Source of the DNA: Prasinococcaceae sp. CCMP 1430
Lineage: Eukaryota > Plantae > Prasinodermophyta
Length of the DNA stretch: 64,000 nt
Reading direction: 5' to 3'
Assembly (NCBI GenBank): GCA_013416795.1
Contig: RQSC01000015.1
Coordinates: 229,696-293,695, forward strand
Positions 19,742 to 25,569 of this stretch are shown here, one piece after another; the first letter of the stretch is position 1; the number at the start of each line of letters is the position of its first letter. A program made the translations under genes and the position numbers. The notes beneath the pieces are model-generated. The model was not told the DNA's origin, searched no databases, and saw only the letters and a program-made list of their open reading frames with translations.

Positions 19742-20388
19742 CCTCGACATGCTCTCCTAAGTATGATTTGCAAGTTTCGTGTGCACCCTGCGCGTGTGAT
19801 CGAACGCAGCCAACGCATACGCACTCAACCACGACCCAGAGCGCACTCGCTGCCCAGCGCCCTCCGGGCCTGTGTCCCCTTTCGTGCACGGATTGCGATG
19901 ATCTGGCTCACGAAACAGATCCAAAAAACGAAAAATAGCCATGGCCGGCGCGTCCGCCACACTGCGCCCACGTAGTGCAGCCTGCCAAGAGGGCGCGCCG
20001 GTCTCTCCGCCGTCAAATACGCGGCGCAGACAGGATAGAACGGGCAAGCAGGCAGCGCAGGTGGGGGGGGGGGGGCGACGCGCCCGTGCTTTAAGCATGG
20101 CGCGCCGCGGGCGTGGCAGTGACCGGCATGGCCGTCGGGCACTCGCTGCGTTCTCGTGCGCAGGCGTGGTTGCGTGCTTGGCTGTGGGCGGGGCCGTGCC
20201 GGCGCAAGGCCAGGGGGCGAGAGGTGCGCTGGCCAAATGACGTGCTTGCATGCCCGCGTGCTTGATGCACGCACGCGAGCGCGAGTGCATGTGTGCGTGC
20301 GCTCTCGCGCGCTCGCACGCGTGCGCTATGCGAGGACGTTTCGTTGCGTTGACACCATGTCGCCGTGGCTCCGCGAAACATCCCGCAG

Positions 20389-20786
20389 GAGACAGCAGCA
20401 GAAAGTATCGCCGCCCGCAGGGGACCGACCCGCGCGTGTTTGGCACGCCCCGTCAACCAGAGCTGGGTCGTCAGGCGAAGGCAGCATCGATGGCGCGAAG
20501 CATCGATGGCGCAAAGCGCTCACTGCGACAGGTCGAGGACGAGGGCGCAGGACTCGGTGTGCCTGTGGAAATACATCAGCACGAGGAGGTGGTTCTGGAG
20601 GGGCAGGCTGACTGCGCCGAGGCGCCCACCGACGCGTTCGATGACAGCATGCCTGTCTTTGTGCGACGCAAGGAGCTCGGTAGCGAACAGAAGAAGGAGC
20701 TAGCCAAGCGGATCGCCGCCGACAAGGAGCGACAGCGCCGCAAGCAGAGGCTCGGAGGGGAGGGAACGCTGCTGGAGACGTACTGA
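20389..20786 (+). CDS. Hypothetical protein (last exon); upstream exon(s) uncertain, possibly from ATG 19941
   Basis: Coding-like frame after a CCCGCAG acceptor, with a charged C-terminus (KKELAKRIAADKERQRRKQR), TGA at 20784-20786 and TGTAA at about 20883. No family recognised. Confidence 0.45.
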
Positions 20787-20912
20787 GAATCGCGCCACTC
20801 ACGTTGCGTCGCTGCTGGGCATTCAATGTACTGTAGACTAGTACTACTGCTACCCTGTACAAAAGCAATTGTGTTACATACATGTAAGATACGATACATG
20901 TGGGTCCGTCTC

Positions 20913-22546
20913 TCAGGGGTCAACATGCTGGCGCAAGTGCTGCTCGATGGCACTGTAGTACTGCTCTCCGCCGATGAAGGGCAGGTTGTTGTGGTCCCCG
21001 CGCGGTATTGTCACGAAGCGCTTCGGCTCATTTGATGCCTCAAAGAGCCTCCTGCCGACGTCGATGGGCACGATATTGTCGTGCGGGCCGTGCAGAAACA
21101 GCAGGGGCGCTTCCACCTGCGAACATATTGGGGGGTGGGGGGTGAGCCATGTCAGCACGCGTCGCCGGAGGCGTGGTGACGGAGCGGTCGAGCGACGAGG
21201 CCAAGGGCGAAGAGGTGAGCGCCGAATGAGCAGCCACGCTCGCACGCGCGCTGCATTTTGCGAGGCATGTCGGCGAGGGGAGGGCGGGCGTGGGGCAGGT
21301 GCGGGGCATCGTGAGAGTAATCCCCGTTGTGTTGGTCGTGTTGCTTCCCGACTGTCGTCCACATAACTGTGCTATGGCGAGCTGCCCCTGCCGACGGCTT
21401 TGGAAGGCTCCGCGAGTAAGCTCGCATCTCGGCCTCGGCGCACGAGGCGCCTCGCACGCCGGCGGTGGGGCGCGGCCCTCGCGGGCTGGCACTCTCTGCC
21501 TGCTGGCCCGGGGAATTTCGCCCAGTGCTTCTCTGTTCGTTCTCATGCGCGGCCGCCCAGCTCGTCTCCCGGAGAGAGAGCGTCGGGCGCCAGGCCGTCT
21601 GTGCACCGATGGTGTGCCTTCTCGATGCCCCGGGTCCCACAGACTACCCATTTGCTGCCGTCCCCCTCCTACCGCACACCACACAGCAGCTAGCGCGCGC
21701 GCGCGTTCGGCGCTCCATAGGAGCGGCCGAGCGGAGCACACAAGGTCGCGACCCGCTCTCGCACCCGAGCGCAGACCGCCGCGCTCTCGACACCCGCCAT
21801 CGGCGGGTCGCATGCTGGCATGGCTCAGTGCGAGGACGCACCTTATTGATCTTGCCCAGGCTGTCCCACTTGTCCCTCAGCAGCAACTTCAAGCATGGTT
21901 TGAGGAAGGGGTAGATGCTCGCGGCGACCTCGGTGATTGAGGTGAGCGCAGCGTTCAGGATGAGTGCGTCGACGCCGCCCGGGCCCTCCTCCTCGGCGAG
22001 CGCCACACTCACGCAGGTGCCGATGGACTCGCCCAGCAGCACGATCTTCTCGGGCCTCTTGGTCTCGCGCAGCCACTTGAGCGCAGCCCGCGAGTCCGCG
22101 CGCATGCCCGCCTCGGTCGGCTCGCCCTCCGAGCCGCCGTAGCCGCGGTAGTCGACGAGGCAGACTGCCACGCCGTGGAGTTGGCGCAGCTGCAGCGCCC
22201 ACTGCGCGCGATCCGCGCGTGAGCCCGCGTTGCCGTGGAACAGGAGCATGGCCGTCTTCTCGCGCGACTTTGCGGTTTCCGGCGTGACGAACCCTCTGGC
22301 ACCCTCCTGTGCGGCCCAGTACCAGAGCTTGATGCGCACGCCGTCCTCGGTCACAACCTCCACGTCCTCAATCTCGTTGTACGGCGCCTTCAGGCGCTCG
22401 GGCGGCGGGGGGATGGTGCCTGCCTGCGGGAAGTACATGATCTTCCGCTGAAAGACGGCCAGTGCCGCCACGAGCGTCACGCCGAGCGCAGCCGCCCCAA
22501 TGCTGGCCTTGACGGCGACGCCCGCGAGCGCACCTGCAACCCCCAT
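20913..22546 (-). CDS. BEM46/ABHD13-like alpha/beta hydrolase, about 302 aa; exons 22546-21842 and 21116-20913
   Basis: N-terminal TM, FQRKIMYFP, FHGNAG, DYRGYGGSEGEPTEAG, nucleophile GESIG, HGPHDNIVP and GDHNN. A 725-nt GT-AG intron at 21117-21841 has a branch GCTGAC at about 21156. Further in-frame ATGs lie upstream, to 22744. Confidence 0.88.
21302..21632 (-). ncRNA. RMRP: RNase MRP RNA, intronic and sense to the host BEM46/ABHD13 gene
   Basis: P1 is CGGGGCAUCG (21632-21623) pairing with CGAUGCCCCG (21311-21302). P3 is CGGUGC/GCACUG with an ACAGAC internal loop. CR-I GAAAUUCCCCG (21519-21509) pairs with CR-V ACAACGGGGAUUACUCUC (21330-21313) to form P4. P8 is GGCA-GAGAG-UGCC (21500-21488), the MRP-diagnostic GARAR loop. 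P9 is GCCC-GCGA-GGGC and CR-IV is AGUUA. Confidence 0.9.
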
Positions 22547-23064
22547 CGGCGAGCGCCACCTGCGCATGCGCAGACGGGTGCGGCGGGGGCGCCGCGAAGC
22601 CACGTGCGGCGGTGCCGATGACATGCGCGCGCTGCGAGTTAGCCCGCCGAAGCCGCTGCAGCGCGACTGCACGATCGCCGACGCCGACGCCGACGCTGAC
22701 GCCGGTGCCGGCGGCACAACCCTAAACGAGCTGCCTGCGTGCATCCTCGCTGGCGCGCCCGAGCCACCCACACGCGCGGGCGCGCGCTACCACCGCCACC
22801 GCGCGTGCGCCTCCTCGCACCACTCACCACGGCCGATCGGCGCCTTCCATCCCTGCGCCCCCCTCCCAAAGCCCCCTCCTTCTCCCCCCCCCCCGCCCCC
22901 CCTCCTTCCTCCCTCACGCGCCCCAAGGGGCAGGCGCTCGCGCGAGGCGCGCGCGCTGTGGCACGGTCCGCGCCGCTGGGTTCCGGGTCCGTGGCCAGCT
23001 CAACGCCCCTGCACTTTTTGCTCGGCCTTTGCCGCGGTTTGGCTGGATTTTGATCGAGGTTTGA

Positions 23065-25569
<2,505 letters not shown>

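Follow-up and report, generated by a model that had tools for sequence, protein, structure and literature searches.

An RNase MRP RNA housed in a hydrolase-gene intron of the Prasinoderma lineage and flanked by intron arms predicted to pair

A 331-nt RNase MRP RNA lies in sense orientation within the single intron of an α/β-hydrolase gene in a 64,000-nt stretch of DNA from Prasinococcaceae sp. CCMP 1430 (Prasinodermophyta; assembly GCA_013416795.1, contig RQSC01000015.1, forward-strand positions 229,696 to 293,695); this stretch is referred to as the window, and positions are counted from its first letter. The host gene is read from the minus strand with its ATG at 22546 and corresponds to Prasinoderma coloniale PRCOL_00002900; the RNA is separated from the donor of the intron by 209 nt and from the acceptor by 185 nt. 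The best reading of the locus is that the MRP RNA probably arises through transcription of the host gene by RNA polymerase II (Pol II), followed by processing of the intron. A preliminary description, made from the letters of the window, had placed the RNA in this orientation in an intron at 21117-21841 and had suggested that it is released from a Pol II intron; the placement is exact, and the suggested release gains support from an intron position shared with a relative, from constraint on the RNA, from flank pairing that appears to be selected, and from contigs in which exon, intron and exon are joined.

The segment 21298-21636, when scanned alone, scores 58.8 bits against the Rfam family RF00030, whose gathering score is 50. 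A scan of 20700-22300 gives 46.4 bits with full model coverage, poor pairing of the closing helix P1 and a misplaced 5′ end; the true 5′ end is 39 nt further upstream, as revealed by the alignment with the relative. A default Rfam scan of the whole window at gathering thresholds finds no match to MRP RNA; taking this null as a true absence was rejected, as the score obtained for the segment alone marks it as an artefact of alignment and filtering, and routine annotation would miss the MRP gene because the default scan of the window reports nothing. P1 shows a compensatory change from C-G to G-C in contig L001 of the relative (three sequences from two lineages were compared), and other helices of the RNA also display compensatory pairs between window and relative. 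The conserved regions CR-I, CR-IV (of MRP type) and CR-V are present, with CR-I and CR-V able to pair in the P4 pseudoknot; helix P8 is capped by a GARAR pentaloop, the feature that separates MRP RNA from RNase P RNA (PMC4287351). At the level of sequence, the locus is confirmed as a real RNase MRP RNA in host-sense orientation.

The host gene is recognisable as a hydrolase on both sides of the intron. Exon 1 encodes an N-terminal hydrophobic segment and a GESIG nucleophile motif, and matches the Pfam families Abhydrolase_1 and Hydrolase_4 (profile positions 3-130 of 239); at the C-terminal end, exon 2 supplies the conserved hydrolase motifs LFLHGPHDNIVP and GDHNN, in which the catalytic Asp and His are presumably located, and it is 62% identical over 21116-20916 to residues 250-315 of P0003, a contiguous homologue of 315 aa. 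The splice junctions read AAT AAG|GTGCGT at the donor (G at 21841) and TTCGCAG|GTG GAA GCG at the acceptor (G at 21117). The resulting protein junction GKINK|VEAPLLFLHG is present in the 302-aa EukProt entry EP00793_Prasinoderma_coloniale_P003526 (PRCOL_00002900-RA) and also in an open reading frame (ORF) of an MMETSP transcript (UniRef A0A7R9TBZ0). The donor is predicted to sit in a small hairpin, whose equivalent in L001 is a predicted 4 bp. A21152, within a CUGAC consensus, is the candidate branch point, lying 35 nt before the 3′ splice site and 150 nt past the 3′ end of the MRP RNA, in agreement with the distance of about 150 nt given in the preliminary description; its use as the actual branch point is putative, being read from the sequence.

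A single JGI sample provides two contigs that match the window at 100% identity: L031 (1897 nt) is without exactly 21841-21117, and L032 (2622 nt) keeps the intron (2622 = 1897 + 725). Both are without a 162-nt GT-AG intron (20225-20386) of a convergent plus-strand gene; because the intron of this neighbour has been removed, both contigs come from RNA and not DNA. The 5′ end of L031 places the start of the host transcript at or before 22857. An MMETSP assembly likewise holds the spliced ORF (P0258) alongside P0230, an ORF that continues past exon 1 into intron sequence. Splicing of the intron thus occurs in vivo, and RNA in which exon and intron are joined is common enough to assemble.

The nearest protein relative (P0002), found in TARA Oceans and Logan assemblies, has a host protein 60% identical to that of the window. 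Its ORF enters an intron after ...GRIHK, the same intron position as in the window (contigs L001-L004), and this intron, 1253-2002 of L001, contains a sense MRP RNA at 59.0-60.7 bits against RF00030; the intron is removed in a cDNA-like JGI contig (L030). Between window and relative the MRP RNA is 82% identical in the alignment, with 78% in a separate comparison, and the flank interiors are ~46% identical; the alignment reveals no conserved promoter-like block in the 5′ flank. Twelve nucleotides immediately 5′ of P1 (21633-21644, GUCUGUGGGACC) are 75% conserved, unlike the remaining flank, and could belong to the mature RNA, act as a processing signal, or form the top of the stem described below. 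The preliminary description had raised the question of orthologous host introns in related algae: the same intron of the relative holds the MRP RNA, and in a Pedinophyceae homologue of the host gene introns are present and the MRP RNA is absent. Among the green algae compared, the intronic arrangement appears to be confined to the Prasinoderma lineage.

A protein search with exon 2 alone, length-filtered for split genes, returned conspecific variants only, and these supplied a substitution test. A TARA variant 98.5% identical to the window has 1 change in the 331 nt of the RNA versus 11 in 394 nt of flank (Fisher p = 0.008), a substitution density nine-fold lower in the RNA than in the flanks. 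Judged by this pattern of substitution, the MRP RNA is under purifying selection and is no decaying copy.

The two flanks of the intron are predicted to pair with each other into a long imperfect stem, in which the arms share 126 pairs in the window and 127 in the relative. The stem spans from 14 nt past the donor to the branch site, and its innermost pair (21638/21301) adjoins P1, so that the MRP RNA would be held at the apex. The predicted energy in the window is −212 kcal/mol versus −180 ± 5.8 for dinucleotide shuffles of one arm (z −5.6), and in the relative z is −6.6; in neither species was the energy reached by any of 100 shuffles. The stem is far from a perfect duplex: in the window it comprises 32 helices, the longest of 9 bp, and across the two species the longest helix is 9-11 bp and G·U pairs number 12-14. 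The sense strand folds 7-10 kcal/mol more stably than the antisense strand. On visual inspection the arms differ in composition, G-rich on the 5′ side and C-rich on the 3′ side, a skew noted in the window only; the excess pairing survives composition-matched shuffling.

The outermost part of the stem is formed by two ‘zipper’ boxes of 19 nt that are 89% complementary, as found by repeat-pair search. The 5′ box is 78% conserved between window and relative versus ~46% for the flank interior. In the window the outer helix consists of 9 bp, a C opposite the branch A (21152), and a further 9 bp; in the relative the helix gains a compensating G-C pair, and a U·G is replaced by G-C. The zipper box is no repeated intron or introner motif, its matches elsewhere in the window being at chance level. 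The substitutions of the conspecific variant follow the predicted pairing: 8 of the 11 in the flanks hit unpaired nucleotides and the other 3 preserve pairing (U·G to C-G, G·U to A-U, C-G to U·G), giving no pair-breaking change versus 3.1 expected (permutation P = 0.0065), and the stem of the variant is predicted to be more stable still. The folds and substitutions together argue that the flank pairing is under selection at the RNA level. If the stem is selected from 14 nt past the donor, the functional transcript should start at or before the donor, in the host gene; no other argument from sequence speaks as strongly against an internal promoter.

Signals for RNA polymerase III (Pol III) are lacking around the RNA. 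The longest T run in either flank is 2 and none of three or more precedes the 3′ splice site over 185 nt, in line with the absence of a run of four T (T4) claimed in the preliminary description; the longest T run in the 3′ flank of the relative is 3. TATAWA, the plant upstream sequence element (USE; TCCCACATCG) and the B box, allowing up to one mismatch, are found in neither the intron of the window nor that of the relative, although these motifs may not be those of Prasinodermophyta; the whole-intron search includes the 209 nt from the MRP RNA to the donor, where the claimed lack of a TATA over some 210 nt holds. A USE-like GTCCCACAG at 21634-21642, part of the ~12 conserved nt preceding P1, was rejected as a promoter because it is read from the other strand and directly adjoins the 5′ end of the RNA. 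Neither an upstream USE or proximal sequence element with a TATA near −30 nor a T4 shortly after the 3′ end, as in a canonical Pol III type 3 MRP gene, is seen at the locus. In DNA of ~70% G+C the absence of T4 or TATA over ~200 nt is expected by chance; the weight of these missing signals would thus lie in what they imply for Pol III and in their recurrence in the relative, not in statistics.

The proposed course of events is as follows. The MRP RNA would have no transcription unit of its own, but would be part of the Pol II pre-mRNA of PRCOL_00002900 and mature from its intron. The flanks would zip into the stem while the intron is transcribed, presenting the MRP domain as a self-folding apical module to the proteins shared by RNase P and RNase MRP, and bringing the 5′ splice site beside the branch site. 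Because the branch-site sequence is inside the outermost helix, U2 would have to compete with the stem, and slow splicing is expected, in line with the finding that spliced as well as intron-retaining transcripts were assembled. Once the intron has been spliced and debranched, 5′-3′ and 3′-5′ exonucleases (Rat1/Xrn2 and the exosome) would trim it to a P1 protected by protein, a route shared with intronic snoRNAs and with Drosophila RNase P RNA. In this scheme we infer which polymerase acts, the sequence of steps, the trimming enzymes and the effect of the stem on the rate of splicing. A stronger version is more tentative, and we consider it possible without favouring it: the stem may be a dedicated maturation device that holds the intron unspliced until the MRP domain is folded and bound by its proteins, or until the stem is cut. 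If so, the locus would split each transcript between hydrolase mRNA and RNase MRP, tying ribozyme supply to a splicing checkpoint, and the intron would be kept alive by its essential RNA, P. coloniale and the red alga Cyanidioschyzon merolae both being intron-poor.

Several points weigh against maturation from the host intron. The host is an ordinary hydrolase and no highly expressed translation-related gene. The absence of a second copy of the MRP RNA, by blastn, holds for the 64-kb window, to which the search was limited. The promoter motifs of the phylum may differ from those scanned, and ARAGORN detects no tRNA in the window or in L001-L004, leaving the analysis without a Pol III control gene. 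Clearly independent MRP genes of protists (Blastocystis-like loci) are also without a clean T4; a missing T4 alone is not proof, because these other genes end in TGTTTGTT. Finally, L031 and L032 are unstranded merges of two overlapping convergent transcripts, their strand is unproven, and antisense read-through or DNA carry-over could in principle be the source of the intron-retaining contig.

The alternative that keeps the same Pol II precursor differs in its mode of release: an RNase III-type or other endonuclease would cut the stem independently of splicing and exonucleases would finish the ends, so that each transcript would yield either mRNA or MRP RNA. This is a minority possibility, but one to be taken seriously, since the stem is long (~126 bp), its architecture is common to two species and under apparent selection, it abuts P1 and hides the branch site, and intron-retaining RNA is abundant enough for assembly. 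Release independent of splicing is also known for yeast intronic snoRNAs that depend on Rnt1. A splicing-independent release has been described for a Drosophila RNase P RNA (RPR) reporter (PMC6797745). However, a stem broken into so many helices, none above 9 bp in the window, is a poor substrate for canonical RNase III or Dicer; no cleavage signal was identified in the stem, and the intron is demonstrably spliced in both species.

An unconventional internal promoter, either Pol III type 3 or of the Pol II small nuclear RNA type, would make the RNA independently of the host and form its 3′ end without a T run. The block of ~12 nt directly 5′ of P1 with 75% conservation between species could be accommodated by such a promoter, as could promoter motifs peculiar to the phylum; moreover, yeast NME1 is an independent Pol II MRP gene (PMC7277114) and some independent protist MRP genes are without a clean T4. 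We nevertheless hold this to be unlikely: TATA, USE and B box are missing within one mismatch and the upstream flank is otherwise ~46% identical, pairing selected to within 14 nt of the donor would need a start at or before the donor, a terminator is absent for 438 nt, and green-algal Pol III type 3 promoters are reported to be TATA-rich (PMC8287931), with the MRP gene of Ostreococcus tauri having a T-stretch (PMC7671301). A further alternative, in which the copy in the intron is silent or decaying and duplicates a working canonical Pol III gene located elsewhere in the genome, is very improbable. The search for another copy covered 64 kb of the genome and the default Rfam scan of the window misses even this one, which leaves room for such a gene; yet all hallmarks of the family are intact with a score above the gathering threshold, the substitution density is nine-fold below that of the flanks, and the RNA is kept with compensatory changes in a relative whose flanks have reached near-random identity. 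Maturation from the host pre-mRNA is the reading that is set beside known systems below.

The comparison with insect RNase P RNA made in the preliminary description is apt. RNase P RNAs embedded in introns are known from insects and crustaceans, as in Drosophila, where RPR resides in an intron of ATPsynC (PMC4287351, PMC6797745); like the locus described here, it is a sense RNA of the P/MRP family in an intron of a Pol II gene, without Pol III promoter or terminator, and kept across relatives. Drosophila RPR matures through splicing and the action of Rat1/Xrn2 and the exosome, Pop1, Rpp20/25 and Pop4 protecting it, and weak splicing signals (acceptor sites) are proposed to favour RPR assembly (PMC6797745); the slow splicing expected from the stem would parallel these weak acceptor sites (PMC6797745). 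The two differ in that the arthropod RNA is an RNase P RNA, of animals, and no flank stem enclosing the branch site has been described for it. MRP RNA has Pol III signals in all 26 insect species surveyed, as reported before for Drosophila (PMC4287351).

The one other mention found of an intronic MRP RNA concerns the red alga C. merolae, in which a stable linear intronic RNA is identified as RNase MRP RNA in one sentence of a December 2025 preprint (bioRxiv 10.1101/2025.12.01.691491). Both are MRP RNAs from spliceosomal introns in intron-poor archaeplastid genomes; however, C. merolae is a red alga, and the preprint, which reserves a fuller account for a later paper, gives no host gene, flank structure or promoter analysis, so that hosts and stems are not comparable, and the host gene is not identifiable from the preprint or its supplement. 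Ostreococcus tauri, another marine green picoalga with many intronic snoRNAs, has an MRP gene of the opposite arrangement: the RNA, of the same family, is intergenic and uncapped, with a T-stretch downstream, and its synthesis is attributed to Pol III (PMC7671301). In SNORD2-EIF4A2 a conserved intronic duplex conceals the branch point and affects host splicing (PMC10324135); this system also combines an intron-matured RNA with a hidden branch point, but there SNORD2 itself pairs with the intron, while here the flanks would pair over their full length around a 331-nt ribozyme RNA, with an effect on splicing that is our proposal. Yeast NME1, whose MRP RNA is made by Pol II (PMC7277114), is an independent, non-intronic gene; it shows that synthesis of an MRP RNA by Pol III is not obligatory, as is proposed for the present case. 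The preliminary description had held that intronic release was not described for a green-lineage MRP RNA, and this stands for the literature found, no published case having emerged from a search that missed most subscription journals; broader novelty does not, given that both the C. merolae preprint and the Pol II gene NME1 precede it. What appears to be new is the combination of RNA and lineage together with the predicted flanking architecture, which is previously undescribed.

Zipper stems joining the 5′ splice site to the branch site reportedly shorten long introns in yeast. To our knowledge, these stems are short and contain neither the branch site nor an enclosed functional RNA. The coordinates of the features at the present locus are collected in Table 1.

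Table 1. Coordinates of the host gene, its intron, the RNase MRP RNA and the predicted stem; all lie on the minus strand of the window.
Feature	Position	Strand	Description
Host exon 1	21842..22546	-	Coding sequence, 235 codons; ORF and translation; sequence identical to P0257/P0258
Host exon 2	20913..21116	-	67 codons and stop; Hydrolase_4 profile positions 191-233
Single intron of host gene	21117..21841	-	725 nt, GTGCGT...CAG, GT-AG, phase 0, between Lys235 and Val236
5′ splice site hairpin	21828..21841	-	GUGCGU in GUGCG-UCCU-CGCAC; predicted, minimum-free-energy fold
Stem 5′ arm, G-rich	21638..21827	-	~190 nt; predicted fold
Outer ‘zipper’ box, 5′ strand, UGAGCCAUGCCAGCAUGCG	21809..21827	-	15-33 nt past donor; pairs with 21161-21143
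RNase MRP RNA	21302..21632	-	331 nt; host sense strand, wholly inside intron; RF00030
P1	21632-21623 with 21311-21302	-	10 bp, closes the molecule; repeat-pair search
CR-I, GAAAUUCCCCGG	21519-21508	-	Invariant between both species
P8 with GAGAG (GARAR) loop	21500-21488	-	GGCA-GAGAG-UGCC
CR-IV, ACAGUUAUG, MRP-type	21370-21362	-	Invariant between both species
CR-V, ACACAACGGGGAUUAC	21332-21317	-	Invariant between both species
Stem 3′ arm, C-rich	21143..21301	-	~160 nt; predicted fold
Outer ‘zipper’ box, 3′ strand, CGCGUGCUGACAUGGCUCA	21143..21161	-	Holds the branch site
Branch-site consensus CUGAC	21151..21155	-	Sequence reading and pairing diagram in both species
Unpaired C-rich tract and 3′ splice site (…CCCCCCACCCCCCAAUAUGUUCGCAG)	21117..21142	-	Intron sequence, fold
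First T4 on RNA strand	20861..20864	-	438 nt downstream of MRP RNA, past host stop codon

The host gene is divergent from a DHX15/PRP43 gene on the plus strand (ATG 23404), with 857 nt between them (22547-23403). PRP43 acts in ribosome biogenesis and in disassembly of the lariat spliceosome; a promoter region shared by the host and DHX15/PRP43 would be a neat coupling. DHX15/PRP43 (23404-25569) is a single uninterrupted ORF of 721 codons, which fits an intron-poor genome, and against this the retained intron of the hydrolase stands out; its best named matches, at 70-74% identity, are spread evenly over streptophytes and chlorophytes, fitting a deep-branching green lineage. On the other side lies the convergent plus-strand gene (20071-20915, ORF end 20786) with its 162-nt GT-AG intron; its transcript overlaps the 3′ untranslated region of the hydrolase, because the assemblers merged both in L031 and L032.

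A metagenome search with a CR-I/P8 motif pattern returned 18 MRP loci, all from unrelated taxa (G+C 32-57%) and none informative on the Prasinoderma lineage; one pair of the metagenomic loci has a run of five T 8 nt downstream. At two loci (L009:555-1305 and L016:180-1004; G+C 32% and 48%) three tandem tRNA-Sec genes follow on the same strand ~25 nt after the MRP RNA; there is no T run between the MRP RNA and the first tRNA-Sec in L009, the sole flank inspected. This arrangement suggests that, in two unrelated metagenomic eukaryotes, MRP RNA and tRNA-Sec are co-transcribed and split by tRNA-processing enzymes. Blastocystis-like MRP genes on contigs of human-gut and other metagenomes (82-88 bits; L006, L010, L023, L021, L022, L007, L011, L013 and L015) are mostly without T4, the exceptions being L011 and L015 with TTTT 18 nt downstream, and all of these loci carry TCA(A/T)CG...TGTTTGTT just 3′ of the RNA. 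In L010 the MRP gene is ~100 nt from a divergent class II aldolase-like gene; these loci may have a degenerate terminator or a shared bidirectional promoter. A pyrimidine-rich stretch leading to ACAG after the RNA raised the idea that the Blastocystis-like MRP RNA is intronic, and this was rejected, the upstream sequence being the start of the divergent aldolase-like gene; judged by their sequence, the loci are regarded as independent genes that finish in a degenerate TGTTTGTT.

The essential role of RNase MRP RNA is in pre-rRNA processing, and its gene is counted among those of Pol III in vertebrates, insects and plants as well as in O. tauri, the single green alga studied for it; a conserved, evidently functional MRP RNA that probably has no transcription unit of its own is here described from a lineage at the base of green plants. 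Standard Rfam scanning at gathering thresholds overlooks this gene, and any pipeline that demands Pol III signals would drop it. Together with arthropod RNase P RNA and the red-algal note, the locus suggests several independent moves of P/MRP RNAs into Pol II introns. A stem that buries the branch site offers a testable model reconciling a large structured RNA with a spliceable intron, and the locus supports the idea that intron-poor genomes may keep particular introns for the RNAs inside them, with which the C. merolae preprint agrees (bioRxiv 10.1101/2025.12.01.691491).

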